IMG/VR virus record: IMGVR_UViG_3300024999_000030 | Span: 1-64,000 of that record | Length of the DNA: 64,000 nucleotides | Reading direction: 5' to 3' (one strand) | Shown: positions 10,314 through 39,387 of the stretch, in pieces | Position numbering within the stretch: position 1 is the first letter of the stretch | Layout of the letters: each line of letters begins with the position of its first letter | Notes under the pieces: model-generated | What the model was told of the DNA's origin: nothing | Database searches by the model: none | Seen by the model: only the letters and a program-made list of their open reading frames with translations | Made by a program: the position numbers and the translations under genes

Positions 10314-10891
10314 TGTATGTAGAAATATCTCCTAGACAAACTGGTAAAACTACTAGACTTATAGCGGCTATTAAGGCTCATTTAGCAGCTCATCCGTCAA
10401 ATGAAGCTATACTGTATGCCGTTAATTATAATTATATTTATAATTCTATGCCTCTTGTGGATCAAGGCCGCATTAATCGTTTCAGTCGCTGTAGCTATGC
10501 CGGTCGCAATAAAATTAAACTATTTGTAGATGAATTCGATTACTTATTATCAATGGAAGATTTTAATGAAATTCGTTGTAGATATAATTTAAATAATTCA
10601 TATTGGAGCACAACACCAAGGTTTATAAGGAATTCAATTAAGAAAGACGATGATGTTTTATTATCTATCTTATTTCTTAATGGAGGAAAGTGGTTTAGTA
10701 TGAATAAGGCTAACGTTAGACATGTTTGGAGGAATCGTTTTTATCTTAAAACTATTTCAAAAGAAGTTATGAAAATAGAATATTTTGGTTACTGGTTTCC
10801 GCCGGGAATGCTTCCGGTGTTATCTAAAGATGTTTATAGTCCAGCCGGATTTATAGAACATTTTATTCCACCTAAATGGCTTGACTTTTGA
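10313..10891 (+). CDS. P-loop NTPase-like protein (terminase/helicase-like Walker motifs)
   Basis: SPRQTGKTT Walker A; LFVDEF Walker B-like. Confidence 0.55.
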   Translation: MYVEISPRQTGKTTRLIAAIKAHLAAHPSNEAILYAVNYNYIYNSMPLVDQGRINRFSRCSYAGRNKIKLFVDEFDYLLSMEDFNEIRCRYNLNNSYWSTTPRFIRNSIKKDDDVLLSILFLNGGKWFSMNKANVRHVWRNRFYLKTISKEVMKIEYFGYWFPPGMLPVLSKDVYSPAGFIEHFIPPKWLDF

Positions 10892-10909
10892 CTATTAATA
10901 TTTTATATT
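10881..10909 (+). promoter_or_regulatory. Promoter of tRNA operon 1
   Basis: TTGACT-N17-TATATT, with CTATTAAT inside the spacer. Confidence 0.85.
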
Positions 10910-10929: not shown

Positions 10930-10998
10930 ATGAATATAGTAAATAGTTCACTCCTGTTATCGTTGTCTAGTCTTCCTAGCGCCCGAGGGGTGTTCTAA
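10930..10998 (+). CDS. Attenuator leader peptide 1 (Leu/Ser-sensing) MNIVNSSLLLSLSSLPSARGVF
   Basis: 11 of codons 6-17 are Leu/Ser, using five different Leu and five different Ser codons; the 3' end is the antiterminator strand. Confidence 0.85.
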   Translation: MNIVNSSLLLSLSSLPSARGVF

Positions 10999-11023
10999 GT
11001 CTATCTCCCTTTAGACTTTTGAC

Positions 11024-11058
11024 AAGCCCCTCGGAAATCGGGGGGCTTTTGGTTTTTT
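11024..11058 (+). terminator. Attenuator terminator 1
   Basis: AAGCCCCTCGG-AAA-TCGGGGGGCTT plus U-tract; its 5' strand also pairs with CGAGGGG at 10984. Confidence 0.85.
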
Positions 11059-11060
11059 AT

Positions 11061-11147
11061 GCGGATATGGTGGAACTTGGTAGACACAGAAGTCTTAAAA
11101 ATTTCTGGCCCATGGCCGTCCCAGTTCAAATCTGGGTATCCGCACCA
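11061..11147 (+). tRNA. tRNA-Leu(TAA)
   Basis: Cloverleaf, loop CT-TAA-AA, long V-arm, encoded CCA. Confidence 0.92.
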
Positions 11148-11150
11148 AAT

Positions 11151-11237
11151 GCGGTGGTGATGTAATTGGTAGCCATGTCAGCCTTAGAAGCTGATGGAAG
11201 AAATTCCGTATCGGTTCGAGTCCGATTCACCGCACCA
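11151..11237 (+). tRNA. tRNA-Leu(TAG)
   Basis: TCAGC-CTTAGAA-GCTGA arm, long V-arm, CCA. Confidence 0.92.
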
Positions 11238-11280
11238 AAAAGGGGATACTGGACGAAGATTAAATATGGTAAATTATAAT

Positions 11281-11358
11281 GGGCCGGTGATGCAATTCGG
11301 TAGACATCAATCTCTCAAAAAGATTGTTTTAAGGTTTCGAACACCTTCCGGCCTACCA
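11281..11358 (+). tRNA. tRNA-Leu(CAA), short variable region
   Basis: CAATCT-CTCAAAA-AGATTG; only ~4 nt before T-stem; CCA. Confidence 0.85.
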
Positions 11359-11365
11359 AAATAAT

Positions 11366-11453
11366 GGAGGGTGGGGCCACTTGTCTAGTGGACACCGCCT
11401 TGAAAGCGGTTGAGACTTTAGGGTTTTCGGTTGAATTCCGACACCCTCCTCCA
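11366..11453 (+). tRNA. tRNA-Ser(TGA), 8/4 acceptor/T-stem type
   Basis: GGAGGGTG/CACCCTCC 8 bp, TCGG/CCGA 4 bp, 5 bp D-stem with 5 nt loop, U73. Confidence 0.8.
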
Positions 11454-11456
11454 AAT

Positions 11457-11544
11457 GGAAGATTGGCCGAGTGATTTAAGGCTCCGGTTTGCTAAACCGG
11501 CGAGTCGAAAGGCTCCAAAGGTTTGAATCCTTTATCTTCCGCCA
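11457..11544 (+). tRNA. tRNA-Ser(GCT), canonical 7/5
   Basis: CCGGT-TTGCTAA-ACCGG, long V-arm, G73-CCA. Confidence 0.92.
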
Positions 11545-11547
11545 AAC

Positions 11548-11635
11548 GGAGAGTGAATCGGTCGGGGACCGAACACGCTCGGAAAGCGTTGTGTATCCGC
11601 AAGGATATAGGAATCGTGCTCTTCGCTCTCCGCCA
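11548..11635 (+). tRNA. tRNA-Ser(GGA), 8/4 (or 9/3) type, C33
   Basis: GGAGAGTG(A)/(T)CGCTCTCC, long D-stem TCGGT/ACCGA, loop TC-GGA-AA, V-arm with GCAA loop. Confidence 0.78.
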
Positions 11636-11641
11636 ATTTAT

Positions 11642-11728
11642 GGGAAGTGATCTGAACCGTTGTTCAGCATCGTCTCGAAAACGAATGGGACCTTCGGGTT
11701 TAGGGTTGAACTCCTTCGCTTCCCGCCA
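11642..11728 (+). tRNA. tRNA-Ser(CGA), 8/4 (or 9/3) type
   Basis: GGGAAGTG(A)/(T)CGCTTCCC; 6 bp D-stem CTGAAC/GTTCAG with 4 nt loop; loop CT-CGA-AA. Confidence 0.8.
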
Positions 11729-11731
11729 AAC

Positions 11732-11763
11732 AAAAAAGCCCAGGTATAAATACCTGGGCTTTT
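11732..11763. terminator. Bidirectional terminator ending tRNA operon 1
   Basis: AAAAAAGCCCAGGTA-TAAA-TACCTGGGCTTTT between convergent units. Confidence 0.8.
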
Positions 11764-11782
11764 ATTAATATGTTATTGGATT

Positions 11783-14707: not shown

Positions 14708-14783
14708 GTCCAGTTAGCTCAATTGGCTAGAGCAGTATTCTCTAAAAACACTGACATCCGTTCGATCCGGATACTGGACACCA
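14708..14783 (+). tRNA. Amber suppressor tRNA (CTA)
   Basis: 76 nt cloverleaf GTCCAGT/ACTGGAC; loop CT-CTA-AA; one A.C mismatch in anticodon stem; TTCGATC T-loop; CCA. Confidence 0.85.
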
Positions 14784-15567: not shown

Positions 15568-16173
15568 ATGAAGAAATTTATTTGCACAATGTTGGCAGCG
15601 GCTCTTGTGGGGCTCTCGGCCTTTGCGGCTGCACCTGAACGTAAGTATGAGCTAACTTTTGGGCCTGCTTATACTTGGTCTGAATCAGCTCATATGCAGA
15701 GTTTGAATGGTCTTTCGTCCGCAACTAATATTAAGCTTTCGTTTCAAGATGATATGGGTCTTTATGTCGGGTTTTTCTTGCCTATTAGCAAGAATTTAGG
15801 ATTTTATCCTGGCCTTACGGCAAATTGGGACGGAAAGTTTTGGAGAGATGGTCAGTCTTATAATCAAATTACCTTTAAGACTTATGCTCTTGATCTAGAC
15901 GCACGATACAATTTTAATTTTAACAGTGGCACTTTTTATTTGATGGGTGGACCTACTATCACTTTCCTTCCCGAAGGGCAGCGACTTTCCGCGAATGTGG
16001 GTGTTGGTCTTAACTTTAAGTTGTTTTCATCTGACGCGTTTCGTCTTACCTTTGAGGGTAAGTATCGCGTCAACCCTAGCACTTTTTCCTACACTGATGT
16101 TAAGGGTGGGGATTATGAGTCTGCTCGTCCTGAGACTTGGACGGCTTTTACTGGCTTGACTTTTAAGTTCTAA
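15568..16173 (+). CDS. Outer-membrane beta-barrel protein with signal peptide
   Basis: MKK + hydrophobic + AFA signal; alternating beta strands; C-terminal GLTFKF. Confidence 0.8.
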   Translation: MKKFICTMLAAALVGLSAFAAAPERKYELTFGPAYTWSESAHMQSLNGLSSATNIKLSFQDDMGLYVGFFLPISKNLGFYPGLTANWDGKFWRDGQSYNQITFKTYALDLDARYNFNFNSGTFYLMGGPTITFLPEGQRLSANVGVGLNFKLFSSDAFRLTFEGKYRVNPSTFSYTDVKGGDYESARPETWTAFTGLTFKF

Positions 16174-16184
16174 GGTTGTATATT
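16156..16184 (+). promoter_or_regulatory. Promoter of tRNA operon 2
   Basis: TTGACT-N17-TATATT overlapping the OMP gene end; TATTAAT at 16181. Confidence 0.85.
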
Positions 16185-16218: not shown

Positions 16219-16308
16219 ATGCTTTCTACTTGGTCTCACATCGAATTTGCCGAACGCCATAACGTGATGTTTAATGATATCGCGGGCGTTGGGAGCATTT
16301 GTTTGTAA
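16219..16308 (+). CDS. Attenuator leader peptide 2 MLSTWSHIEFAERHNVMFNDIAGVGSICL
   Basis: AGGAG RBS; codons 5-22 contain all of W,H,I,E,F,A,N,V,M,D, matching the downstream tRNAs. Confidence 0.88.
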   Translation: MLSTWSHIEFAERHNVMFNDIAGVGSICL

Positions 16309-16332
16309 GGCCAAATTAAAAGGCGTGCAAAC

Positions 16333-16366
16333 AAAGGCTCCCGGGAAACTGGGAGCCTTTTACTTT
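16333..16366 (+). terminator. Attenuator terminator 2
   Basis: AAAGGCTCCCGG-GAAA-CTGGGAGCCTTT plus U-tract; alternative pairing with GGGAGCATTTGTTTG at 16291. Confidence 0.88.
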
Positions 16367-16373
16367 ATGTGTG

Positions 16374-16451
16374 GTGACGGAACGCGAAGCGGACGAGCGG
16401 ACTGTCTGTGAAACAGTTGATTAGAGGTTTCGAGGACCTTCCGTCACACCA
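16374..16451 (+). tRNA. tRNA-His(GTG), A73, possible 8/4 fold
   Basis: ACTGT-CTGTGAA-ACAGT; GTGACGGA/TCCGTCAC can form 8 bp with AGGT/ACCT T-stem. Confidence 0.82.
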
Positions 16452-16456
16452 AATAT

Positions 16457-16532
16457 GCGTCTGTGGTGTAAAGCCTAAGCATGATGGACTCCAAACCCAT
16501 CGGATTCAGCTGGCAACTGAGCGGACGTGCCA
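16457..16532 (+). tRNA. tRNA-Trp(CCA)
   Basis: Loop CT-CCA-AA; atypical T-loop CTGGCAA; G73-CCA. Confidence 0.8.
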
Positions 16533-16538
16533 AAATAT

Positions 16539-16620
16539 TCAGGAGAGCGCATATGGGTTGCGACCTGGCTGTTAACCAGATGCGAAAGCACACAGAGTTC
16601 GATTCTCTGCTCCTGAGCCA
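16539..16620 (+). tRNA. tRNA-Asn(GTT) with extended variable arm
   Basis: Loop CT-GTT-AA; V-region TGC-GAAA-GCA hairpin. Confidence 0.85.
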
Positions 16621-16627
16621 AATATAT

Positions 16628-16705
16628 GCCCTGGTAGCTCAGGTGGTTTAGAGCAATCGCTTGATAAGCGATAGGTCGTAAGTTCAAGTCTTACTCGGGG
16701 CACCA
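16628..16705 (+). tRNA. tRNA-Ile(GAT)
   Basis: Canonical cloverleaf, ATCGC-TTGATAA-GCGAT. Confidence 0.93.
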
Positions 16706-16708
16706 AAT

Positions 16709-16783
16709 GCCGCTTTAGCTCAGATGTAGAGCGCTGGCCTGAAGAGCCAGGCGTCGGAGGCTCAAGATCTCCAGGCGGCACCA
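16709..16783 (+). tRNA. tRNA-Phe(GAA)
   Basis: CTGGC-CTGAAGA-GCCAG. Confidence 0.9.
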
Positions 16784-16791
16784 AAAATTGA

Positions 16792-16885
16792 TGCGGGGTA
16801 GACTAGCGGTTCAGTCACTTGGTTCATACCCAAGCCGCACGGTAGCCAATCCGTCAGGTGGGTTCGACTCCCATCCCCGCCACCA
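16792..16885 (+). tRNA. tRNA-Met(CAT), initiator-like, with ~23 nt variable arm
   Basis: 1.72 mismatch (T.C), A11-U24 pair, loop TT-CAT-AC, ACGG/CCGT hairpin in V-region. Confidence 0.78.
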
Positions 16886-16894
16886 AAAATTTAT

Positions 16895-16971
16895 ACCTTG
16901 GTCACCAAGACGGTAAGGTGTAGTCCTCATAAGACTATTATACGGCAGTTCGAGTCTGCCCCAAGGTACCA
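16895..16971 (+). tRNA. tRNA(CAT): elongator Met or Ile2
   Basis: TAGTC-CTCATAA-GACTA; identity not resolvable by eye. Confidence 0.8.
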
Positions 16972-16973
16972 CT

Positions 16974-17050
16974 GCCGTTAAAGAGGAAGGACACGACTCA
17001 CCTGCCTGTCACGCAGGGGAAAGCCAGTGGAAGTCTGGTTGGCGGCGCCA
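16974..17050 (+). tRNA. tRNA-Asp(GTC)
   Basis: CCTGC-CTGTCAC-GCAGG, G73-CCA. Confidence 0.87.
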
Positions 17051-17055
17051 CTTAT

Positions 17056-17176
17056 GGGTCTATCATCTAATAGGGCCATCCGTGATACTAGAGGTATTTA
17101 GTACATGCAAGGGCGAAAATTAAGATGCTCCCGCAGAAAGGGAGTCATGTGGGTGCAAGTCCCGACGGATCCACCA
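17056..17176 (+). ncRNA. tRNA-like RNA with ~45 nt D-loop insertion and non-canonical anticodon loop
   Basis: D-stem ATCT/AGAT encloses a long hairpin; CTCCC-GCAGAAA-GGGAG; imperfect T/acceptor stems; ends ACCA. Confidence 0.6.
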
Positions 17177-17183
17177 AGTTTAT

Positions 17184-17257
17184 GGGGTAATCGTTTAGTG
17201 CTAGGACGAACGGCTCTCTACCGTTAAACCGGAGTTGAATTCTCCGTTACCCTACCA
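17184..17257 (+). tRNA. tRNA-Glu(CTC)
   Basis: AACGG-CTCTCTA-CCGTT, CCA. Confidence 0.82.
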
Positions 17258-17259
17258 AT

Positions 17260-17338
17260 GGCGTAATCGAATAATATGGACTAATTCGCCAGGCCTTCAC
17301 CCTGGATGATACGGGTTCGATCCCCGTTTACGCTACCA
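17260..17338 (+). tRNA. tRNA-Glu(TTC), C33
   Basis: CCAGG-CCTTCAC-CCTGG; canonical T-loop; CCA. Confidence 0.75.
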
Positions 17339-17339
17339 A

Positions 17340-17368
17340 TTGACAATTCCTATTAATGGAATTATATT
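17340..17368 (+). promoter_or_regulatory. Internal promoter for Val/Ala tRNAs
   Basis: TTGACA-N17-TATATT with CTATTAAT in the spacer. Confidence 0.8.
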
Positions 17369-17387
17369 TATTTCTTAAAAGATTTAT

Positions 17388-17463
17388 GCGCCCTTGGCCT
17401 AGTGGCGAAGGCATCTGGTCTACACCCAGAATATCGGGAGTTCGAGTCTCTCAGGGCGCACCA
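17388..17463 (+). tRNA. tRNA-Val(TAC), C33
   Basis: TCTGG-TCTACAC-CCAGA. Confidence 0.85.
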
Positions 17464-17468
17464 ATTTT

Positions 17469-17542
17469 GGGCCGTGGAGTGTGACGCGAGCACGTTTCCC
17501 TTGCACGGAAATAGAGGGGTTGAACTCCCACACGGTCCACCA
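17469..17542 (+). tRNA. tRNA-Ala(TGC)
   Basis: TTTCC-CTTGCAC-GGAAA; G3.U70 present. Confidence 0.9.
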
Positions 17543-17565: not shown

Positions 17566-17590
17566 GCGGGGCTTCGGCCCCGCTTTTATT
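17566..17590 (+). terminator. Terminator of tRNA operon 2
   Basis: GCGGGGC-TTCG-GCCCCGC-TTTT. Confidence 0.88.
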
Positions 17591-28835: not shown

Positions 28836-30221
28836 ATGAAAACTAATAAGAAAACTCATACTGTTGTTCATACCGCTGAAGGCGCCGTTGCAGCTAATAT
28901 TAACGCCAAGCAACAGCTCCGTAGGTCCGTTATGAGCTGCCTCCTTTGGGAGGATTCCTTCTATGAGGAAGGTGTGTCCATTGCTAAGCGTATTACCGAT
29001 TTAGTTAAAAAGGTTGATCCTGAAGATGTAGCTTCGCTCGCTATTGAAGCTCGTGAGGATTTCAAGCTTCGCCATGTTCCATTGCTCTTAGTTCGTGAGC
29101 TTGCTCGTGTGCATAAGGGAGATTCGCTTGTTTCTGATACTTTGGCACGAGTAATTCAGCGTCCAGATGAAATGGGTGAATTTGTAAGCCTTTATTGGAA
29201 AGAGGGAAGACAGCCTTTGTCTATGCAGGTTAGAAAGGGTATTGCTAAGGCCATGGGTAAGTTTAATGAATACTCCTTAGCTAAATATAATTCTTCTAAA
29301 TCTAATATTAAGCTTCGTGATATTCTCCGTTTGGTTCATCCTTCTCCAGTTGGTGATGAACAGACTCGTTTATGGAAGCGTATTTTAACCGATGAATTGG
29401 CTACTCCCGATACTTGGGAAGTTGCTTTGTCTGCTGGTAAGGATAAAAAGGAAACTTGGACTCGCCTTATTGATGAAAATAAGCTTGGTGGATTAGCTTT
29501 TTTACGTAATCTTCGTAACATGGAAACAGCTAAAGTAGATAAGGATATTGTACGTAGGGGCTTTGACCAAATTAATGTTTCTAGGGTTCTGCCTTTCCGT
29601 TTCCTTTCGGCTGCAAATGCTGCTCCTAAGTTTGAAGTTGAACTTGAGAAAGTAATGCTTAAGAGTTTTGAGGGTCGTGAAAAACTTCCTGGCAAGACAT
29701 TGTTTATTGTAGACGTGTCTGGAAGTATGGGCGGTTCGTTATCTCATAAGAGTGAAATGAATCGTCATGATGCAGCGGCAGCTCTTGCCATCGTTGCTCG
29801 TGAGATGTGTGAAGACCCAGTTATTTATGCTACAGCAGGAAACGATATGACTCGCATTCACAAAACTTCTATCGTTCCAGCTCGTCATGGGTTTGCCCTT
29901 AAGGATGCTATTCGTACTCAAGCTAACCAACTTGGTGGTGGAGGCATCTTTCTTAAGCAAGTTATGGACTATGTAAAGAACGCAGAGGGTGAGGCCGATA
30001 GAATTATCGTCATCACTGACGAGCAGGATTGCGACATCAAGCATAAGCCATCTACGGCTCAGCCATTCGGTAGGTATAATTATATGCTTAACGTTTCAGT
30101 AGAGAAGAACGGTATCGGCTACGGGCAGTGGACTCACATCGACGGTTTCTCTGAGGCTGTATTAGATTTCATTCTTCTTAGTGAGAAGGAAAACGAGCAG
30201 GAGATATGTCAGACTAACTAA
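28836..30221 (+). CDS. rsr: Ro60/Rsr TROVE-vWA RNA-binding protein
   Basis: L+R.VMSCLLWE..FYE, AREDFKLRHVPL, PDTWEV.LS, LRNLRNM, VDVSGSM MIDAS, ITDEQ. Confidence 0.92.
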   Translation: MKTNKKTHTVVHTAEGAVAANINAKQQLRRSVMSCLLWEDSFYEEGVSIAKRITDLVKKVDPEDVASLAIEAREDFKLRHVPLLLVRELARVHKGDSLVSDTLARVIQRPDEMGEFVSLYWKEGRQPLSMQVRKGIAKAMGKFNEYSLAKYNSSKSNIKLRDILRLVHPSPVGDEQTRLWKRILTDELATPDTWEVALSAGKDKKETWTRLIDENKLGGLAFLRNLRNMETAKVDKDIVRRGFDQINVSRVLPFRFLSAANAAPKFEVELEKVMLKSFEGREKLPGKTLFIVDVSGSMGGSLSHKSEMNRHDAAAALAIVAREMCEDPVIYATAGNDMTRIHKTSIVPARHGFALKDAIRTQANQLGGGGIFLKQVMDYVKNAEGEADRIIVITDEQDCDIKHKPSTAQPFGRYNYMLNVSVEKNGIGYGQWTHIDGFSEAVLDFILLSEKENEQEICQTN

Positions 30222-30280: not shown

Positions 30281-30374
30281 GCGGGAGTCGTCCAGCGGCC
30301 AGGACAGCGGTCTTATAAGCCGCCTCGCTCCAGATTAGAGCAAAACGGGGGTTCGAGTCCCTCCTCCCGCACCA
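30281..30374 (+). tRNA. tRNA-Ile(TAT) with ~23 nt variable arm
   Basis: GCGGT-CTTATAA-GCCGC; GCTC/GAGC hairpin in V-region; CCA. Confidence 0.82.
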
Positions 30375-30731: not shown

Positions 30732-30743
30732 ATTTAATTTGAC

Positions 30744-30772
30744 TTGACTTTCTTCTATTAATATATTATATT
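30744..30772 (+). promoter_or_regulatory. Promoter of tRNA operon 3
   Basis: TTGACT-N17-TATATT with CTATTAAT in the spacer. Confidence 0.85.
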
Positions 30773-30787
30773 ATTTGAGAGAGGACG

Positions 30788-30883
30788 ATGAATATGTTTA
30801 CCCAAGGAACCCCTAAACCACAGACAAGAACATACCAACGCTATTGCGGTAGGTATGTGCAAAATTTGGGGGCTTTGTCCTAA
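30788..30883 (+). CDS. Attenuator leader peptide 3 MNMFTQGTPKPQTRTYQRYCGRYVQNLGALS
   Basis: GAGG RBS; codons 5-23 consist only of T,Q,G,P,K,R,Y,C, matching the downstream tRNAs. Confidence 0.9.
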   Translation: MNMFTQGTPKPQTRTYQRYCGRYVQNLGALS

Positions 30884-30907
30884 GTATCTGTATCGCGGTT
30901 CAAAGAC

Positions 30908-30934
30908 AAGCCCCCGAGAAATCGGGGGCTTTTT
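30908..30934 (+). terminator. Attenuator terminator 3
   Basis: AAGCCCCCGA-GAAA-TCGGGGGCTT plus U-tract; alternative pairing GGGGGCTTTGTC (30868) with GACAAGCCCCC. Confidence 0.88.
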
Positions 30935-30948
30935 ATTTAAAGAAAAAC

Positions 30949-31038
30949 GGGTCCGTCACCTAGTGGCCGAGGGTTCCAGCCTTTTAAGCTGGCGAGGTTT
31001 TACCTCCACCGTTGGTTCAAATCCAACCGGTCCCACCA
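30949..31038 (+). tRNA. tRNA-Lys(TTT) with long variable arm
   Basis: CCAGC-CTTTTAA-GCTGG; GAGG/CCTC V-arm. Confidence 0.85.
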
Positions 31039-31049
31039 AATATAATTTT

Positions 31050-31130
31050 GCCTCCGTAGCTCAGTCGCGTTAAGTAGCATCCGGCTCTTACCCGGAAGGT
31101 CGCAGTCATCGCAAGCTGCCGAGGGCACCA
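31050..31130 (+). tRNA. tRNA-Lys(CTT)
   Basis: TCCGG-CTCTTAC-CCGGA; atypical T-loop. Confidence 0.8.
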
Positions 31131-31137
31131 AAAAAGT

Positions 31138-31215
31138 CTGGGTGTAGCTCAGTCTGGCCAGAGCATCGCGTTTGGGACGCGAGGGTCGGGGGTCCGAATC
31201 CCTCCACCCAGACCA
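31138..31215 (+). tRNA. tRNA-Pro(TGG)
   Basis: C1-G72, A73, TCGCG-TTTGGGA-CGCGA. Confidence 0.92.
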
Positions 31216-31226
31216 AAGGAGATAAA

Positions 31227-31925
31227 ATGCCAGTGTGCGTTCTTTGTCATGCGGAGTTTCCAAATAGGCAGCGAATAGACGATAAGATTAGAAATTTAAA
31301 AAATAGGAAGCTTTGTTTAAAATGCTCTCCGTTTGGAGAACACACTCAGGCTCATAATTTATTGCCCAGAAAGAGAAATTTTACAGACGATCAGTTTATG
31401 GAGGCGGTAAAAAATAATATCACTATTAAGGCTGTGTTGTTGCAGCTTAAATTAAGCCCGAGAGGAAATAATTATAAATTAGTACATAGGCTAGTGGAAC
31501 AATTTAATTTAGACGTATCTCATTGGAGTGTGGAGTTATCAAACTCTAATACTATGAAGAAGAAGTACTTAAGTATTAAAAGGGATGCGTCAAAAATCTT
31601 ATGTTTGGGGAGCACAACCGGTCGGCGAGCGGTTAAGGCGTGTCTCTTGAGAACTGGAGTCAAAAACGAATGTGCAATGTGCCATTTATCTGTGTGGCAA
31701 GGCCAGCCACTGTCTTTGCAGCTACACCATATTAATGGTCAATGGGATGACAACAGAGAAAATAATTTGCTGTTACTATGCCCAAATTGTCACTCTTTGA
31801 CAGATACGTTTTGTGGCAAGAAGAACGAAACAATTAATAAAGCTTGTGCTTGTGGTGCTCGCATAAAAAGTAAAAGTACACAGTGTGTGAAGTGTTACAA
31901 GGGGAGTCGTAAATTAGGTAAATAA
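31227..31925 (+). CDS. HNH homing endonuclease within tRNA operon 3
   Basis: CAMC....WQGQPLSLQLHHING...DNRENNL.LLCPNCHSLT. Confidence 0.88.
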   Translation: MPVCVLCHAEFPNRQRIDDKIRNLKNRKLCLKCSPFGEHTQAHNLLPRKRNFTDDQFMEAVKNNITIKAVLLQLKLSPRGNNYKLVHRLVEQFNLDVSHWSVELSNSNTMKKKYLSIKRDASKILCLGSTTGRRAVKACLLRTGVKNECAMCHLSVWQGQPLSLQLHHINGQWDDNRENNLLLLCPNCHSLTDTFCGKKNETINKACACGARIKSKSTQCVKCYKGSRKLGK

Positions 31926-31926
31926 T

Positions 31927-32002
31927 GTCCTTATAGCTCAATGTATAGAGCGTCTGGCTACGGACCAGAAGGTTGGGGGTTAGAGTCCTCCTAGGGACAC
32001 CA
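31927..32002 (+). tRNA. tRNA-Arg(ACG)
   Basis: TCTGG-CTACGGA-CCAGA; A20. Confidence 0.9.
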
Positions 32003-32005
32003 AAT

Positions 32006-32093
32006 GGTGGGGCGGCAGCGACGGTGAGCTGCAAGTGGCTGTAACCCACTCGCCTTAATGGCTTAGGGAGTTCGAATCTCTCCCCCACCACCA
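32006..32093 (+). tRNA. tRNA-Tyr(GTA)
   Basis: AGTGG-CTGTAAC-CCACT, long V-arm. Confidence 0.9.
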
Positions 32094-32102
32094 ATAATAT
32101 AC

Positions 32103-32188
32103 TGAGGAGTGGCCCAATTGGCAGGGCACGGGGCTTTGGACCCCGCGTGGTCTCCACATTGAAGGTTCGAGTCCTTCCTCCTCAGCCA
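32103..32188 (+). tRNA. tRNA-Gln(TTG) with long variable arm
   Basis: U1-A72, CGGGG-CTTTGGA-CCCCG, GTGG/CCAC V-arm. Confidence 0.85.
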
Positions 32189-32194
32189 AAATAT

Positions 32195-32280
32195 GCAGGA
32201 GTCCCCTAGTGCTCGATGGGACCGCACTTGTAATGCGGCGGCGAAAGCCCACGTGGGTTGAAATCCCACCTCCTGCTCCA
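32195..32280 (+). tRNA. tRNA-Thr(TGT) with extended variable arm
   Basis: CCGCA-CTTGTAA-TGCGG; GGC-GAAA-GCC. Confidence 0.85.
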
Positions 32281-32288
32281 GCGCTTAT

Positions 32289-32364
32289 GGATCAGTGGCG
32301 AAGTGTTAAACGCGACCGCCTGCAGAGCGGTTTATCGGGGGTTAAAATCCCTCCTGGTCCTCCA
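32289..32364 (+). tRNA. tRNA-Cys(GCA)
   Basis: ACCGC-CTGCAGA-GCGGT, U73. Confidence 0.9.
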
Positions 32365-32374
32365 AAAAATTTGA

Positions 32375-32462
32375 TGGGGAGTCGCGTAGCGGCCTAGCGC
32401 ATCGGTCTCTGGAACCGACAGAGGAAACTCTAACGAAGGTTCGAATCCTTCCTCCCCTGCCA
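32375..32462 (+). tRNA. tRNA-Gln(CTG) with long variable arm
   Basis: TCGGT-CTCTGGA-ACCGA; AGAG-GAAA-CTCT. Confidence 0.85.
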
Positions 32463-32464
32463 AT

Positions 32465-32538
32465 GAGGATTTGGTATAGTGCTCGTGCCCTCGGTTGCCT
32501 GCCGAGAGAGGCGGGTTGGATTCCCGCAATCCTCTCCA
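32465..32538 (+). tRNA. tRNA-Gly(GCC)
   Basis: CTCGG-TTGCCTG-CCGAG, U73. Confidence 0.85.
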
Positions 32539-32551
32539 ATTGGAGAATATA

Positions 32552-33223
32552 ATGATTAAAATAAAATTCACGTGTGAATATTGTGGAGTTGAAGGCGAAA
32601 GGCGAAAATCAGATTACAATCGAGCTAAACATCATTATTGCTCTCATAAGTGCAGTGTAAAGGCTTCGGATTCTATTGTCTACACAGAATGTGCTTTTTG
32701 TAGAAAGCAATTAATATTAAAAAGAAATAAGGTTAGGGCAAAAGCTAGAGTGTTTTGTTCTCATTCTTGTGCCTCTAAAATGATAAATGTGGAGCGAGGT
32801 GGAAAACTAAGGAAGGGAGAAATTAACTGTAGCTATTGTGGAAAAAAATTGGCCGGGGAGCAATTCAAATATTGCTCTATTTCTTGCCAACACCAACATA
32901 TCTATTCAAATTTTATTAAAGCCTGGCAAGATGGAATAGTTTCTGGTTCCACGGCAAATGGAGGTGTCGCCTCGACCATTAGAAAGTATTTACATGATAA
33001 ATATGGATGTAGGTGCGCCATATGTGGATGGAATAAAATTAATCCACATACACATAAAATCCCACTGCAAGTCCATCATATTGATGGAAATTCTCATAAT
33101 GCCAGTGAAGATAATCTTATTTTGATTTGTCCGAATTGTCACAGTTTAACTGATAAATTTGGCGCCAGAAACAAGGGGAACGGTAGAGACTCAAGAAGAA
33201 TACGAAGAGCTAATCAAAAATAA
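32552..33223 (+). CDS. HNH homing endonuclease with Zn-ribbon repeats, within tRNA operon 3
   Basis: GGAG RBS; repeated CxxC...YCS..C; CAICGW...LQVHHIDGN..NA..DNL.LICPNCHSLT. Confidence 0.88.
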   Translation: MIKIKFTCEYCGVEGERRKSDYNRAKHHYCSHKCSVKASDSIVYTECAFCRKQLILKRNKVRAKARVFCSHSCASKMINVERGGKLRKGEINCSYCGKKLAGEQFKYCSISCQHQHIYSNFIKAWQDGIVSGSTANGGVASTIRKYLHDKYGCRCAICGWNKINPHTHKIPLQVHHIDGNSHNASEDNLILICPNCHSLTDKFGARNKGNGRDSRRIRRANQK

Positions 33224-33297
33224 GCTTCCATAGTGTAGCACCAACACGACAGTCTTCCAAACTGTAATCGCGGGTGGGACTCCCGCTGGAAGCTCCA
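33224..33297 (+). tRNA. tRNA-Gly(TCC)
   Basis: ACAGT-CTTCCAA-ACTGT, U73. Confidence 0.88.
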
Positions 33298-33300
33298 AAT

Positions 33301-33379
33301 GTCCTCATGGCGCAAATGTATAGCGCGAGAGTTTCTCCTAAACTCTAGGCTGGGGGTTAGAGTCCCTCTGAGGACACCA
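33301..33379 (+). tRNA. tRNA-Arg(CCT)-like with 9 nt anticodon loop
   Basis: Body resembles Arg(ACG) at 31927 (A20); AGAGT-TTCTCCTAA-ACTCT. Confidence 0.72.
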
Positions 33380-33382
33380 AAT

Positions 33383-33465
33383 GTCAGTGTAGACGAGGTG
33401 GTCTTCTAAACCACTATTCGTAATTGGATCTGAAAATGTGGGTTCAAGTCCCACCGCTGACACCA
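33383..33465 (+). tRNA. tRNA-Arg(TCT) with rearranged D-domain
   Basis: Intact acceptor, anticodon (GTGGT-CTTCTAA-ACCAC) and T arms; only 8 nt before the anticodon stem; D-loop-like AATTGGAT lies 3' of it. Confidence 0.75.
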
Positions 33466-33472
33466 AATTTTT

Positions 33473-33549
33473 GCAGGCTTCGTATAGTCGTACTAGTACG
33501 CTAGTTTCGTAAACTAGAAACGGTGGATAATAGCCGCCAGCCTGCTCCA
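33473..33549 (+). tRNA. tRNA-Thr(CGT)
   Basis: CTAGT-TTCGTAA-ACTAG; atypical T-loop ATAATAG. Confidence 0.8.
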
Positions 33550-33672
33550 TCGGGCCTGAATGATGAGGGTGAATCAAACCTGAATCATCCCAGATGTCCC
33601 ATAAATGCACGGTGATGAACCGTGCATTTGACTTTTATAATCTTATATCTTATATTGTTTTGTGGAGGAAAT

Positions 33673-33945
33673 ATGACCTGGAACTATAGAGTTTTTAAAA
33701 AAAATTCAGTTAGCCCATCAGGCGAAAAGTCTTTTTATTATGAAATTCATGAAGTGTATTATAAAAAACACATAGACGACATTCCTAGTTTTGACGATAT
33801 TGATTATATTTCAGTAGATAGTATATCCCCTCAAGGTGAAACAGAAGAAGAATTACGTTTGGACTTAGATATAATGCAAAAAGCATTTAATTTACCTACA
33901 GTAGATTTTGATGAATTATATAAAAATAAAGGATGGGAAAAATGA
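33673..33945 (+). CDS. Small conserved phage protein
   Basis: GGAGG RBS; MTWNYRV...IHEVYY motif; promoter at 33628. Confidence 0.7.
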   Translation: MTWNYRVFKKNSVSPSGEKSFYYEIHEVYYKKHIDDIPSFDDIDYISVDSISPQGETEEELRLDLDIMQKAFNLPTVDFDELYKNKGWEK

Positions 33946-35585
33946 AAGATAAAGGTTCACAATTAGCAAAAATGCTAGAGGACTTGGAGATGGCAGAGGA
34001 AGCTGAAGCTAACGACGAGTCTTCATATCCTGCTATAGCATCCAATCCAAAATCTAGACCAGCAGCACCCGATATGGCAACCTCGACTCTTCAACGTGGA
34101 ACAGTAACAAACTCTAACAATAAACATATCGCTATGGTTGATTGGATTCCAACTGTACTAGGTATTACCAGAGAAGAGCAGTTTCATAGTTATCTAAACG
34201 ATATTAATGATACTACTGATGTTTCTAATTTTACGAGTATTGATTCTCGTATTGCCTTTTGGTATACTTTATTGACCGCTAATAGATTGAAATTAGTTTC
34301 TTTTGAAACTATTAAAGATGGTAATAAAATTATCTTGAGATATAAAATCAATACCAGTGATTTTGATGATGCATGTGGCTTTTCCGACATCACAATTGAT
34401 GTATATTCTACTAATATTACTACCACTGCTAATATTAGTAACTTTATTTTAGATGAAAATGATGAAGATGATAAAAAATTAGTATTGAATAAAGTGGCCA
34501 TTAATAGTTCTGGAGTGGATGACTGTTCCGCTATCGACTTGGGCATGGCTAAAATTACTACATCTAAGGGTGATGTAGTTTATATGTGTCGTCACGTTGC
34601 TCGGGCTATGGATAGAGCAGTGTCTACTGATTGTTTTTGGTTTGAAGACCTTGAAATTGTTCGCAATGTGGGAGATATTATTTGCGGACTTTATAAGGCA
34701 TGTAGAAATAAAGAACGCACTGTCTATATTGTTGAAGGCGAAAATGAAGTTGTGCGAGACCAAGAAGGGTTTTTTATGCGAAATATTTACAAAGACATTG
34801 TGAATGATATTAAAACATTTTTGGATTCCAAATCTTTATTTAGAGAGGCGGGTATTGCTTATCGTCGTGGTTATTTAATGTATGGTCCTCCTGGTAATGG
34901 TAAAAGTCAATTAGCAAGATATCTTTTTAATGAATTTAAGGATTTTAATTTGTATGCGTATTATCATACTGAGCGTCGTAGGGGTGGATCGGTAGACGAA
35001 CGTCTTGAGAGAACTTTTGCCCTGGCAAGAGACAACGCTCCTAGCTTTTTACTTTTAGAGGATTTGGATCGTATCGTTAGTCATGGATCTGCGTCTAAAG
35101 AAGTTATTACTATTGATAGATTGTTTAATATGATGGATGGTGTTTGTTCTCCCGAAGGAATTGTTTTGTTAGCTACCTGCAACCACCCAGAAAATCTTGA
35201 TATGGCTTTACTTGGTCGTCCAGGAAGATTTGACAGGGTAATTGAAGTCGGACATCCAGATAGGGCAGAACGAGAATCTCTTATCGGATATTTATGTTCT
35301 TGTGGTGAAAAAAGTAAACTTAATGCTAAAGAAATTAAAGCTGTAGCTCAATTAGCAGATTCCACTGAAAGCTTGAGCATGGCTTATATTAAAGAATTGT
35401 ATTCTAGAGCTTTTCTTAAACAACTTAATGCGGGTAATAGAAAACTTCCTATTAGTCCTTTTGTTCTTTTGGATTTAGTCCATGAAGTTGTTGATGAAAG
35501 CAGAAATGTAGATGTAATTGCTCGCCGCACGGGATTTCGTACTAATTATGAAAACTCTGCTAGGGGCGAGGATCATACGTCGTAA
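33942..35585 (+). CDS. AAA+ ATPase (BCS1/FtsH-like ATPase domain)
   Basis: RRGYLMYGPPGNGKS, LLLEDLD, LATCNHPENLDMALLGRPGRFDR. Confidence 0.9.
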   Translation: MKDKGSQLAKMLEDLEMAEEAEANDESSYPAIASNPKSRPAAPDMATSTLQRGTVTNSNNKHIAMVDWIPTVLGITREEQFHSYLNDINDTTDVSNFTSIDSRIAFWYTLLTANRLKLVSFETIKDGNKIILRYKINTSDFDDACGFSDITIDVYSTNITTTANISNFILDENDEDDKKLVLNKVAINSSGVDDCSAIDLGMAKITTSKGDVVYMCRHVARAMDRAVSTDCFWFEDLEIVRNVGDIICGLYKACRNKERTVYIVEGENEVVRDQEGFFMRNIYKDIVNDIKTFLDSKSLFREAGIAYRRGYLMYGPPGNGKSQLARYLFNEFKDFNLYAYYHTERRRGGSVDERLERTFALARDNAPSFLLLEDLDRIVSHGSASKEVITIDRLFNMMDGVCSPEGIVLLATCNHPENLDMALLGRPGRFDRVIEVGHPDRAERESLIGYLCSCGEKSKLNAKEIKAVAQLADSTESLSMAYIKELYSRAFLKQLNAGNRKLPISPFVLLDLVHEVVDESRNVDVIARRTGFRTNYENSARGEDHTS

Positions 35586-35597
35586 TGAGGAAAGATA

Positions 35598-37157
35598 ATG
35601 ACTATTTTAATTATATTATTATCCCTATGGTGCATAGGGGACTTATCACTGTTTGTTTATTTCTTTAAATCTGGAAAAGCTGAACGAGAAGAAATATTAG
35701 CTCAAAGAGAACGATTATTTCAAGAAGAATCAAATCAACGCGCCAAGCTCAGTGAAGAAAGAGGGACCTTTTATGATGAGCAAGAGAAGTTTCATGCTCA
35801 ACTTGCACAATTAACGCTTACTGCTTCATCTATATCCGAAAGAGAAGATAATCTTAAGGAATATGGCTCTCAACTTGATAATGCTAAGTCAGAGTTAATT
35901 GATAAGTCTGGAATACTCAATATTAAAGAATTAGCTATAAGTGCTAGGGAAAAAGATTTATCAATTAAAGAAGCTTCTCTTGAGCATTTAGCAGAGGAAT
36001 ATAGAGCTAGGGTCGAACGCGCAGCGGAAATGTCTCTTTCTGAGGGCAAAGCTATTGTTTTAGCTAGTGCTAAAAAAGAAACTGAACGAGAAGTGGCAAT
36101 CCTCTTTCGTGAAGCTAAAGAAGAAACACAGCGTCTTGCAGATATTGAAGCACAGCGGATTATGACTTTAGCAATTGAACGGGTAGCTATTTCACAGGCT
36201 CCACTTAAACTTACGTCTCAAATTATTATTGCGGATGAAAACTTTCGTGGAAAGCTAATTGGACATGAGGGTAAAAATATTAAGTTATTGGAGGAGTTGG
36301 CAGGAGTTCAAGTCCTCACTAATAATGAAGACACTAAACTGCTAACTGTGTCTGCCTTTAACCCAATTTCAAGAGAATTATGTAAAAGAACTATTGAAGA
36401 ATTAATGACTACTAATTTTGTTAATCCCAAAAAAATTAAAGAGATATATGAAAAACATTCCAGCGAGTTGGAGAAGGAAATTTTGAAAACTGGTAGAGAT
36501 GCTTGTCGTGGTTTGGGACTTTCTATGCCCCATACAGAAATAGCTAAGCTTTTAGGAAAATTAAAATATCGCACTTCCTATGGTCAAAACGTACTCAATC
36601 ATTCAATTGAGGTAGCTCAATTATGTGGGGCTTTAGCTGGTGAACTTAAACTCGACATTCGGTTAGCAAAACGCGCTGGCCTACTACATGATATTGGTAA
36701 AGCTATAGATATTGAAAAAGAAGGCACTCATCCTGAATTAGGTGGGATTGCTGCTAGGAGATATGGGGAACATGAAATAGTTATTAATGCAATAGAAAGC
36801 CACCATGAAGACATAGAAGTGATTAATCTCATCTCCATCTTAGTTGCAGTTTGTGATGGTATTTCTGGTTCTCGTCCTGGAGCTAGAAGAAACAATCTTG
36901 CTGATTACGTGAAGAGAATAGAAACATTGGAAGGTATAGCATTGTCTTTCCAAGGGGTTACTCAGGCAACCGCCCTTCAAAGTGGCAGAGATTTAAGGGT
37001 TGCTGTGAATGCAGATATAGTGGATGATGCCATGTCTTCTCAATTAGCTAGTTTAATTGCTAAGCAAATTCATGATCAAATGGATTATCCAGGTAAAATT
37101 AAAGTTACAATTATTAGAGAAAAAAGAATGATTGCTTCTGCGGGTCATTCCTATTAA
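35598..37157 (+). CDS. rny: Ribonuclease Y
   Basis: N-terminal TM helix, coiled coil, KH (GKLIGHEGKNIK), HD domain (RTSYGQNVLNHS, AGLLHDIGK, IESHH, D.ISGSRPGAR), C-terminal GRDLRV...YPGKIKVTIIRE. Confidence 0.93.
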   Translation: MTILIILLSLWCIGDLSLFVYFFKSGKAEREEILAQRERLFQEESNQRAKLSEERGTFYDEQEKFHAQLAQLTLTASSISEREDNLKEYGSQLDNAKSELIDKSGILNIKELAISAREKDLSIKEASLEHLAEEYRARVERAAEMSLSEGKAIVLASAKKETEREVAILFREAKEETQRLADIEAQRIMTLAIERVAISQAPLKLTSQIIIADENFRGKLIGHEGKNIKLLEELAGVQVLTNNEDTKLLTVSAFNPISRELCKRTIEELMTTNFVNPKKIKEIYEKHSSELEKEILKTGRDACRGLGLSMPHTEIAKLLGKLKYRTSYGQNVLNHSIEVAQLCGALAGELKLDIRLAKRAGLLHDIGKAIDIEKEGTHPELGGIAARRYGEHEIVINAIESHHEDIEVINLISILVAVCDGISGSRPGARRNNLADYVKRIETLEGIALSFQGVTQATALQSGRDLRVAVNADIVDDAMSSQLASLIAKQIHDQMDYPGKIKVTIIREKRMIASAGHSY

Positions 37158-37725: not shown

Positions 37726-37749
37726 AGGCCGCGCCTCTAGGAGGTTGTA

Positions 37750-38619
37750 GTGGCAATTATAATTGAAGCTAAAGACCCCATTACAATGGAGTCTACCCCA
37801 GTAAAAACCGCAGTTTTGGGGAGTAATTGTGATTTATCTAATGATAATGTAACTATTACGCAGTCTGGCGGGTGTTGTCCAGGTTCGTCTGGTAATAATC
37901 ATCAGATTCCTGGTACTGCCCGTCAGACTGTGTGTTCTTCCTGTGGAACTTCATACCCAGTTGAAAGATCTAGAACTACTGGTGGTTTTAGTACAATTTC
38001 TTGTCCAACCTGTGGAACCGCTGCAGGGTATGTCGGCGATGGGGGAACCTGTCAATGGTATACCTGTAGTGGTTCTAGTTGTAGTTCTTGTGGCACTTGC
38101 CCAACTAAACGTATTATAGATGAGTGTGAATTAGAAATTCTCAATGATTTAATTTGTCAGATGAGGGCGGAATTGAAAGATTCCAATACTTCTTGTTATG
38201 CTTTTTCTGCTGCCGAATTGTCTGCCTTTTTAGATGCAGCTTTGTCTGAATTTAATGGTACTCCCACTTTTACTAATTTTACCTGGAAAAGTATTGACCT
38301 GAGAAGATTCAGGTTTATTATAGTTGAGGGAGCTGTATTATTAGCTCTTGGTGCTCAAGTTCTTATTGAAGCTGGTAGAGAATTCACTATTACTGAGAAT
38401 GGTATTAATTTTAATCCAGCTCAAGTTTCTGCCGCTTTGCAGAATCAATTCACGGCGAGATTTACTCAATACAAGAATGATTTACTTTTTATTAAAGATC
38501 ATTTCCGCGCTTCGCCTGCGGCTGTCCTTAATTACCAGAGTTTACTGGTTAATGATGGTATCCTTGGCAATCCCGCGATCGCGCGCCTGAGACACCTACG
38601 TCAGAGACGTATCTTTTGA
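37750..38619 (+). CDS. Putative head-tail connector/neck protein with Cys-rich N-terminal insert
   Basis: GTG start after GGAGG; C-terminal helical adaptor-like region; multiple CxxC pairs. Confidence 0.55.
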   Translation: MAIIIEAKDPITMESTPVKTAVLGSNCDLSNDNVTITQSGGCCPGSSGNNHQIPGTARQTVCSSCGTSYPVERSRTTGGFSTISCPTCGTAAGYVGDGGTCQWYTCSGSSCSSCGTCPTKRIIDECELEILNDLICQMRAELKDSNTSCYAFSAAELSAFLDAALSEFNGTPTFTNFTWKSIDLRRFRFIIVEGAVLLALGAQVLIEAGREFTITENGINFNPAQVSAALQNQFTARFTQYKNDLLFIKDHFRASPAAVLNYQSLLVNDGILGNPAIARLRHLRQRRIF

Positions 38620-38739
38620 CAACAAAGGAGATATAGGCGTATGAACAGTGTGGCAAACGCGGCAATGCCTGGAGACCATCGTGAACACAAGGTTTGTTCA
38701 GTGTGTAAAATAAAAAAGCGACACTTAAGACCGAGGAGA

Positions 38740-39387
38740 ATGAAAATGTCAATTAAGGTTATTGCAAAAAAACTTACCGGGAAGGCGAGAAAAAAACTGC
38801 CTGAATCTTCATTCGCAATTCCAGCTTCTCACCCACAAAACAAAGGCAAGAAGGACAAATTCCCGATTAATGATGAATCTCATGCCCGGAATGCAATTAG
38901 CCGAGCCAATCAGTTTTCCACTTCGCCTGATTGGTGGAGCGGCTCGGCTCAAGAGTTAGTCAATACCGTAACTAGGGCGGTTAAAAGTAAATTTCCTAAA
39001 ATTGAGATTTCTGATAAAGCCAAGAAAAAGAAAGCTAATTTATCTGAAATTTTAGATTTAATAGTAACTGCAGCCGACGAGCTTGATAACCTGGGACTAA
39101 CCAAAGAAAGTACTATACTAGATAATATCTCTCGTCTTCTGATCGCTACTGAACCTCTTAAAGTTCAGCAACCTCCCCCACCTTCTACAAATCAAGCTAA
39201 ACCAGGAACTGGAGATGTTAATCCACCACCTATTCAACAACCTGAAACAACCGATGGGAAAACTCCGATAAATGTGAAAGATTCTAAAAAAACACCATCG
39301 CTAACTACCAAACCTGGGGAGGCAGCTAAACCTGTGGAAGGACAAACTATTTCTACAACACCTCCCGCAGAAACGCCAAAGGTATAA
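38740..39387 (+). CDS. DUF6582-like head-associated protein with ADxLDxxG motif
   Basis: GAGGAG RBS; ARKKLPESSFAIP...KFPINDESHARNA; AADELDNLGLTKES. Confidence 0.6.
   Translation: MKMSIKVIAKKLTGKARKKLPESSFAIPASHPQNKGKKDKFPINDESHARNAISRANQFSTSPDWWSGSAQELVNTVTRAVKSKFPKIEISDKAKKKKANLSEILDLIVTAADELDNLGLTKESTILDNISRLLIATEPLKVQQPPPPSTNQAKPGTGDVNPPPIQQPETTDGKTPINVKDSKKTPSLTTKPGEAAKPVEGQTISTTPPAETPKV

Follow-up and report, generated by a model that had tools for sequence, protein, structure and literature searches.

Why does a huge uncultivated phage place a tiny open reading frame directly in front of a cluster of tRNA genes, and why is most of this frame written only in codons for the amino acids served by these same tRNAs? 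The question was raised by an ORF in the first 64 kb of a phage contig of 332,730 bp (IMGVR_UViG_3300024999_000030); these 64,000 nucleotides are referred to below as the window. The preliminary description had interpreted the ORF as the leader of an attenuator, in which 19 consecutive codons are drawn only from the downstream tRNA set, including codons for three Arg, two Gln and two Gly isoacceptors. The observation is confirmed, and the interpretation is supported by the analyses presented here. The positions of all features are collected in Table 1.

The sensor codons of this ORF (leader 3) read TQGTPKPQTRTYQRYCGRY and use only T, Q, G, P, K, R, Y, and C, with all eight being present. These are exactly the eight amino acids served by the tRNA operon that starts 14 nt after the terminator of the element. 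ARAGORN identified Lys ttt, Pro tgg, Arg acg, Tyr gta, Gln ttg, Thr tgt, Cys gca, Gln ctg, Gly gcc, Gly tcc, and Thr cgt tRNAs in this operon. An additional Arg tct tRNA was read by eye and is scored as a tRNA by Rfam at 37.7 bits, while a tRNA of the Arg cct type is called Gly tcc by ARAGORN because the copy in the window has a 9-nt anticodon loop; its orthologs in two related contigs (L031 and L050, see below) have a normal CCT loop. The three Arg, two Gln, and two Gly isoacceptors named in the preliminary description are therefore all correct. A further tRNA-like gene with the anticodon CTT has an odd T arm, but is conserved in a relative.

The match between ORF and operon is not a chance effect. 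The background frequency of the eight amino acids is 0.379, which gives a probability of 9.6e-9 for 19 of 19 codons, and the run is the longest in all six frames of the window, the next longest being 11. None of 200,000 nucleotide shuffles of the 57 nt reaches the observed value, and the other five frames score only 6-10.

A promoter lies about 10 nt upstream of the ORF and belongs to a phage consensus that occurs 15 times in the window against 0.8 expected. The end of the ORF is involved in a predicted helix, in which GGGGGCTTTGTC (30868-30879) pairs with GACAAGCCCCC (30905-30915), as stated in the preliminary description. This antiterminator helix competes with a strong intrinsic terminator, and the stop codon of the ORF lies at the 3' edge of its 5' arm. 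The two HNH ORFs inside the operon have no phage-consensus promoter of their own, and the proposal of the preliminary description that they share the same control is a fair inference. They are absent from the corresponding operons of the relatives and are thus secondary insertions.

Table 1. Positions of the attenuator elements and tRNA operons in the window (all on the + strand).
Feature	Position	Remarks
Promoter of operon 1	10881..10909	
Leader ORF 1	10930..10998	22 codons; codons 6-17 read SSLLLSLSSLPS, 11 of 12 Leu or Ser
Antiterminator 1 and terminator 1	10984..11059	antiterminator 10984-10994 with 11021-11033 (-24.6 kcal/mol); terminator 11024-11048 plus T run (-17.6 kcal/mol)
tRNA operon 1	11061..11728	Leu taa, tag, caa; Ser tga, gct, gga, cga; terminator at about 11737-11765
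Promoter of operon 2	16156..16184	
Leader ORF 2	16219..16308	29 codons; codons 5-24 read WSHIEFAERHNVMFNDIAGV, 17 of 20 in the set, all ten amino acids of the set present
Antiterminator 2 and terminator 2	16290..16366	antiterminator 5' arm 16290-16307, 3' arm about 16326-16343 (-28.6 kcal/mol); terminator 16333-16360 plus T run (-21.6 kcal/mol)
tRNA operon 2	16374..17542	His gtg, Trp cca-like, Asn, Ile gat, Phe, two Met (cat), Asp gtc, an unknown RNA, Glu ctc, Glu ttc, Val tac, Ala tgc; terminator at about 17566-17590
Promoter of operon 3	30744..30772	TTGACT, 17 nt, TATATT; an overlapping second match starts at 30739
Shine-Dalgarno site of leader 3	about 30781-30785	GAGGA
Leader ORF 3	30788..30883	31 codons plus TAA stop (30881-30883); a second in-frame ATG at 30794 is better spaced from the Shine-Dalgarno site
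Sensor codons 5-23 of leader 3	30800..30856	19 of 19 in the set
Hairpin inside the sensor of leader 3	30831..30857	CATACC...GGTATG; candidate RNA polymerase pause hairpin
Antiterminator 3	30866..30917	5' arm 30866-30879 (last leader codons), 3' arm 30905-30917; -21.5 kcal/mol
Terminator 3	30908..30939	10-bp G+C-rich stem (30908-30931), GAAA-type loop, T run; shares 30908-30917 with the antiterminator; -19.5 kcal/mol
tRNA operon 3	30949..33549	Lys ttt, Lys ctt-like (31049-31130), Pro, Arg acg, Tyr, Gln ttg, Thr tgt, Cys, Gln ctg, Gly gcc, Gly tcc, Arg cct-like (33301-33379), Arg tct (33383-33465), Thr cgt; HNH ORFs inserted at 31227-31925 and 32495-33223
Terminator ending operon 3	33602..33630	overlaps the next promoter at 33628

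Two sister elements of the same build occur in the window, each matched to its own operon. Leader 1 is rich in Leu and Ser codons and precedes a Leu/Ser tRNA operon, whereas leader 2 polls W, H, I, E, F, A, N, V, M, and D and precedes the operon for these ten amino acids. The three sets are disjoint and together cover all 20 amino acids. A table of the residues of leaders 1, 2, and 3 against the three operon sets reads 11/7/3, 5/18/5, and 3/6/21 (chi-square p = 1.9e-6), and none of 200,000 random 2/10/8 partitions of the 20 amino acids reaches the observed 50 of 79 matches. Every amino acid of each set is present in its own leader. Composition does not account for the match, since 0, 1, and 0 of 200,000 nucleotide shuffles reach the observed counts for leaders 1, 2, and 3, and the match is not shown by the other five frames. 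Note that several tRNA identities rest on weaker grounds: His and Asp appear only at relaxed ARAGORN thresholds and have unusual T loops, and the Trp-like, the Lys ctt-like, and the last two Ser tRNAs were read by eye in the window, although the Trp orthologs of the relatives are called by ARAGORN at a relaxed threshold and the two Ser tRNAs are called in one of the relatives (L057). Moreover, leader 2 keeps three out-of-set codons inside its sensor (S6, R13, G23), the N-terminal flanks of all three leaders use codons of other operons, which would cause cross-talk, and an internal promoter-like site at 17340 could free the Val and Ala tRNAs from control by leader 2.

The geometry of the predicted helices was examined by folding the nascent RNA up to the end of the 3' arm of the antiterminator (segment 3), with 30 nt masked for a ribosome at successive A-site codons. 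The antiterminator, i.e., the helix between segments 2 and 3, is intact as long as the ribosome is at or before about codon 23 in leader 3, codons 14-17 in leader 1, and codons 20-23 in leader 2, and is abolished with the ribosome further on or at the stop codon. The sensor runs end at codons 23, 17, and 24, respectively, and therefore fill the part of the ORF in which a stalled ribosome leaves segment 2 free. In every lineage for which energies were computed, the antiterminators are at -21 to -35 kcal/mol and the terminators at -17 to -23 kcal/mol. However, the equilibrium fold of the complete leader RNA prefers the terminator in nearly every ribosome position, and any read-through would depend on the co-transcriptional order of folding, as is also the case in classical attenuators. 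With no ribosome at all, the 2:3 helix is predicted, so that an untranslated leader would read through, unlike in trp superattenuation; support for a 1:2 helix is limited to invariant pairs.

The preliminary description had regarded a lack of conservation in related phages as refuting the attenuator, but orthologous leaders do exist. They were searched for via anchors independent of the leaders, namely the AAA ATPase just downstream of operon 3, with orthologs at 77%, 67%, and 62% identity, and the 201-residue protein upstream of operon 2, with orthologs at 61%, 57%, and 56%. The contigs carrying these orthologs (designated by L numbers) contain leader 3 in L050 and in L031/L051-L056, leader 2 in L051/L057/L058 and in L059, and leader 1 in L057 (5523-5591), and in each case the leader sits behind the same kind of promoter and directly in front of the corresponding tRNA operon. 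The reading frame and both ATGs of leader 3 are conserved in L050 and L031/L051, antiterminator 3 also forms in L050 (-21.7 kcal/mol) and in L031, which carries the same leader as L051, and the terminator ending operon 3 is conserved in L031 and L050. The loop between segments 2 and 3 has diverged, while the coding part and the stems are kept. In contrast, L060, whose neighbor protein is 61% identical, has no tRNA operon at this place.

As judged from these orthologs, membership of the set is conserved rather than a peptide sequence. Inside the sensors, seven variable codon columns are purely synonymous, as in the interchange of the Leu codons CTG/CTA, TTG/TTA, and CTT/TTG, and of 13 amino acid replacements, 11 stay in or move into the set of the operon (A/V, N/H, D/N, Q/K, Y/C, Y/R, and P to L), the exceptions being H to Y and T to A. 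Only 37-41% of the single-nucleotide non-synonymous neighbors would do so for leaders 2 and 3, and a hand-calculated binomial at p of about 0.4 gives P of about 1e-3. A Fisher's test of synonymous against non-synonymous columns, comparing sensor and flank, was not significant (p = 0.49). The C-terminal residues, which lie in segment 2, change so as to follow the RNA: in leader 2, segments 2, 3, and 4 changed together from GGGAGC / GCTCCC / GGGAGC to CTAGGGG / CCCCTAG / CTAGGGG. In an alignment of leader 2 from three lineages, 98% of the antiterminator cells are paired and two pairs are compensatory, compared to 58% or less with slid partners. These covariation statistics are weak, since only three or four lineages exist; 58 of 500 shuffles match the observed value, and the MAFFT alignment of leader 3 is disturbed by indels, although both helices still form when each lineage is folded on its own. 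The hairpin inside the sensor of leader 3 shows one compensatory change from A-U to G-C in L050, which explains the paired replacements Y16C and Y23R. A comparable hairpin exists in leader 2, but none is clear in leader 1. At the level of codons, the sensors poll 7/7, 7/7, 10/11, 12/14, 15/15, and 12/12 of the anticodons in their operons by standard wobble rules. Given the peptide sequences, this is only modestly better than random synonymous choice, with P = 0.013 for L050, 0.06-0.09 for three others, and 0.27 and 0.66 for leaders 3 and 2 of the window, and polling of individual isoacceptors should be regarded as suggestive.

Beyond these few lineages, the search for relatives gave little. 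A megablast search with 12 kb around the element found no match among 50,697 GenBank phage records, and blastn searches with leaders 3 and 2 found none either. The relatives found through the neighboring TROVE protein (L003-L029) are not syntenic, and those with tRNA arrays (L016, L018, L021, L022, L024, L027) have no matching leader. The HNH ORF found only the same phage, the 377-residue and 201-residue neighbors found no informative relatives in IMG/VR, and the 192-residue neighbor of operon 1 has no homologs. A metagenome scan with the promoter pattern shared by leaders 1 and 3 returned only the source contig and two chance hits, a scan of genome contigs with the core of leader 3 found nothing, a search with RNase Y was uninformative, and a test for TAG recoding was negative in this window. 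No comparable leader was found in four cultured tRNA-rich phages or in five other huge-phage loci; an automated survey of other phages gave one borderline ORF in Pantoea phage AAS21 (P = 0.0013 among 176 tests), which was judged to be chance. The device appears to be restricted to this small clade, albeit on a small sample.

Taken together, each of the three elements is probably a ribosome-mediated transcription attenuator of the trp/his/thr type that governs a phage tRNA operon, although promoter activity, translation of the leader, coupling of transcription and translation, and the physiological signal are inferred without expression data or a known host. In this model, host RNA polymerase of the sigma-70 type starts at the phage promoter, and a ribosome loads on the leader and follows the polymerase. 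If every aminoacyl-tRNA asked for by the sensor codons is available, the ribosome runs to the stop codon and covers segment 2, segment 3 pairs with segment 4, and the transcript ends 3-15 nt before the first tRNA. If any polled tRNA is scarce or uncharged, the ribosome stalls inside the sensor, the 2:3 helix forms first, and the polymerase reads into the tRNA array and, in this phage, into the two inserted HNH genes. The new tRNA then relieves the stall, which closes a negative feedback loop.

Of the alternatives considered, the most serious one keeps the switch but replaces the signal: amino acid starvation, or a general loss of translation capacity in the infected cell, would time or throttle tRNA synthesis according to host physiology. 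The ribosome senses aminoacyl-tRNA rather than tRNA as such, as established for the trp, his, and thr leaders, and the coverage of isoacceptors by synonymous codons, only modestly better than chance, fits this view. However, making more tRNA does not help when an amino acid is missing, and the strict one-to-one partition of all 20 amino acids between three leaders and the operons behind them is hard to motivate unless the output addresses the input. In L050, all 15 anticodons are polled, 13 of them by the exact Watson-Crick codon (P = 0.006-0.013). This alternative seems unlikely, but is not excluded.

The remaining readings find much less support. That the short ORFs encode small proteins with a function of their own, or merely load ribosomes, with the hairpins as leaky terminators or insulators and an incidental resemblance to the tRNA sets, might be suggested by the annotation of the 29-residue ORF as a gene in L051, L057, and L059, and by the short ORFs common between tRNAs in other phages. 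It is very doubtful in view of the threefold match of leaders and operons, the tolerance of replacements within the set, which is not how a functional peptide evolves, the C-terminal changes that keep RNA pairing, and the location of the terminator between a promoter and the genes it serves. Direct sensing of tRNA by the leader RNA, as in a T-box, or binding of a protein without a role for translation is similarly improbable. Although a terminator/antiterminator switch upstream of genes for the translation apparatus is also present in T-box elements, no T-box matches the three leaders even at E <= 1, the conserved ORF has a Shine-Dalgarno site and a stop codon placed at segment 2, and a single specifier could not account for 8-10 amino acids. 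A chance ORF next to an ordinary terminator, for which only the small size of the ORF could be cited, is effectively refuted by the statistics and the conservation.

The closest known systems are the leader-peptide attenuators of amino acid biosynthetic operons (trpL, hisL, pheL, leuL, and the multivalent thrL and ilvL), which likewise have a short ORF with a Shine-Dalgarno site between the promoter and the first structural gene, regulatory codons related to the product of the operon, a stop codon next to segment 2, and mutually exclusive 2:3 and 3:4 helices. The elements described here differ from them in being viral, in controlling tRNAs instead of enzymes, in the predicted read-through of an untranslated leader, and in their breadth: thrL and ilvL poll two or three amino acids, whereas leader 1 polls two and leaders 2 and 3 poll ten and eight, with each codon occurring one to four times instead of in long runs and synonymous codons being spread over the isoacceptors. 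No homology to a curated Rfam leader family was detected at E <= 1, apart from a sub-threshold, chance-level match to rnk_pseudo (28 bits against a gathering score of 55). The pheM leader of the E. coli pheST operon and the His leaders upstream of hisS paralogs in bacilli (PMC2965389) also apply attenuation to a gene of the translation apparatus whose substrate is the polled amino acid, but they are cellular, poll a single amino acid, and control aminoacyl-tRNA synthetases, while here the product is the polled tRNA itself. T-box riboswitches sense tRNA status upstream of translation-related genes, but bind uncharged tRNA directly through a specifier codon and the T-box bulge, with no ORF and one tRNA per element. 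Clusters of phage tRNA genes, often with HNH insertions, are known from T4, T5-like phages, actinophages, and other huge phages.

Genes for tRNAs appear to be controlled at the promoter, by growth rate and ppGpp, rather than by attenuation, and no report of leader-peptide attenuation of tRNA genes in cells or in viruses was found in full-text literature searches. Leaders 2 and 3 would represent natural, highly multivalent attenuators with eight to ten inputs in OR logic within 19-20 codons, which could be reused as compact biosensors of the charged-tRNA pool, and short ORFs in front of tRNA arrays in metagenomic phages deserve a second look instead of being labeled as hypothetical proteins. 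It is somewhat more likely than not that the phage runs a demand-driven tRNA supply system, in which the three leaders between them poll every amino acid and nearly every isoacceptor the phage encodes, and each operon would be switched on only when one of its own tRNA species becomes limiting. This could happen when host tRNAs are degraded during infection or cut by a host anticodon nuclease defense, and the structurally unusual phage tRNAs would then be the resistant replacements. Such a system would be the first known case of tRNA genes regulated by ribosome-mediated attenuation and the first viral sensor of the tRNA pool. If the model holds, it gives a direct answer to the long-standing question of why phages carry tRNAs: the phage would be monitoring decoding capacity codon by codon and topping up only what is missing, which supports the ideas of compensation for a collapsing host tRNA pool or of counter-defense against tRNA-cleaving systems.

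Many phage tRNAs which are normally class I (Lys, Gln, Thr, Met, Ile, Arg) are 83-94 nt long and carry long variable arms, and a long variable arm is also seen in a Gly tcc tRNA of L050, a contig of a related phage lineage. Operon 3 also contains a tRNA-like gene with a non-canonical T arm, which is missed by both ARAGORN and Rfam, but is conserved in a relative (contig L031), where the anticodon is TTT instead of CTT. The Arg cct-type tRNA of the same operon shows a 9-nt anticodon loop (TTCTCCTAA), which is two bases longer than in its orthologs in L031 and L050, and may be inactive or decode unusually. The stretch between the last tRNA and the terminator of operon 3 keeps a short similar motif (AGATGTCCC-like) in three lineages. 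Note that an amber-suppressor-type tRNA (anticodon CTA) is located outside of the three leader-controlled operons. TAG is a rare stop codon (2 of 44 long ORFs), but no ORFs in this window are joined by reading through TAG. A 548-codon frame becomes continuous if a single in-frame TGA (codon 292) is read through, which could represent either two adjacent genes in the same frame or a case of recoding.

An internal promoter-like site (TTGACA-17-TATATT) precedes the Val and Ala tRNAs of operon 2 and could partly free them from leader 2. In addition, the N-terminal flanks of the leaders, as well as three conserved positions inside the sensor of leader 2, use codons that belong to the sets of the other operons, which would give cross-talk between the operons. 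Operon 2 further contains a structured stretch which ends in CCA and has no match in Rfam or by ARAGORN, whereas the related contig L051 shows a promoter-like site and a different structured RNA at the corresponding place.

Coordinates of additional features in the window and in contigs of related phages
Feature	Window	Related contigs
Amber-suppressor-type tRNA	14708-14783	
tRNAs with long variable arms	30949-31038, 32103-32280, 32375-32462, 16792-16885, 30281-30374, 33383-33465	
tRNA-like gene with non-canonical T arm	31049-31130	L031 4307-4387
Arg cct-type tRNA	33301-33379	
Structured stretch inside tRNA operon 2	17051-17183	L051 944 onward (promoter-like site and a different structured RNA)
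Internal promoter-like site of operon 2	17340-17368	
HNH endonuclease-like ORFs	31227-31925 and 32495-33223	
TROVE/Ro60-like protein, AAA ATPase and RNase Y-like protein	28836-30221, 33933-35585, 35598-37157	
Orphan tRNA-Ile (tat)	30281-30374	
Stretch between last tRNA and terminator of operon 3	33550-33600	L031 5380-5545; L050 3350-3470
Frame with single in-frame TGA	37741-39387	
Leader codons from the sets of other operons	codons 2-4 of each leader; codons 6, 13 and 23 of leader 2	

The two HNH endonuclease-like ORFs are inserted between tRNAs of operon 3 and are absent from the orthologous operons of L050 and L051, so they look like mobile homing-endonuclease insertions. An orphan tRNA-Ile (tat) lies between two hairpins in the vicinity of the operon, which is flanked by genes coding for a TROVE/Ro60-like protein, an AAA ATPase and an RNase Y-like protein, together suggesting an RNA-metabolism module around the tRNA genes.
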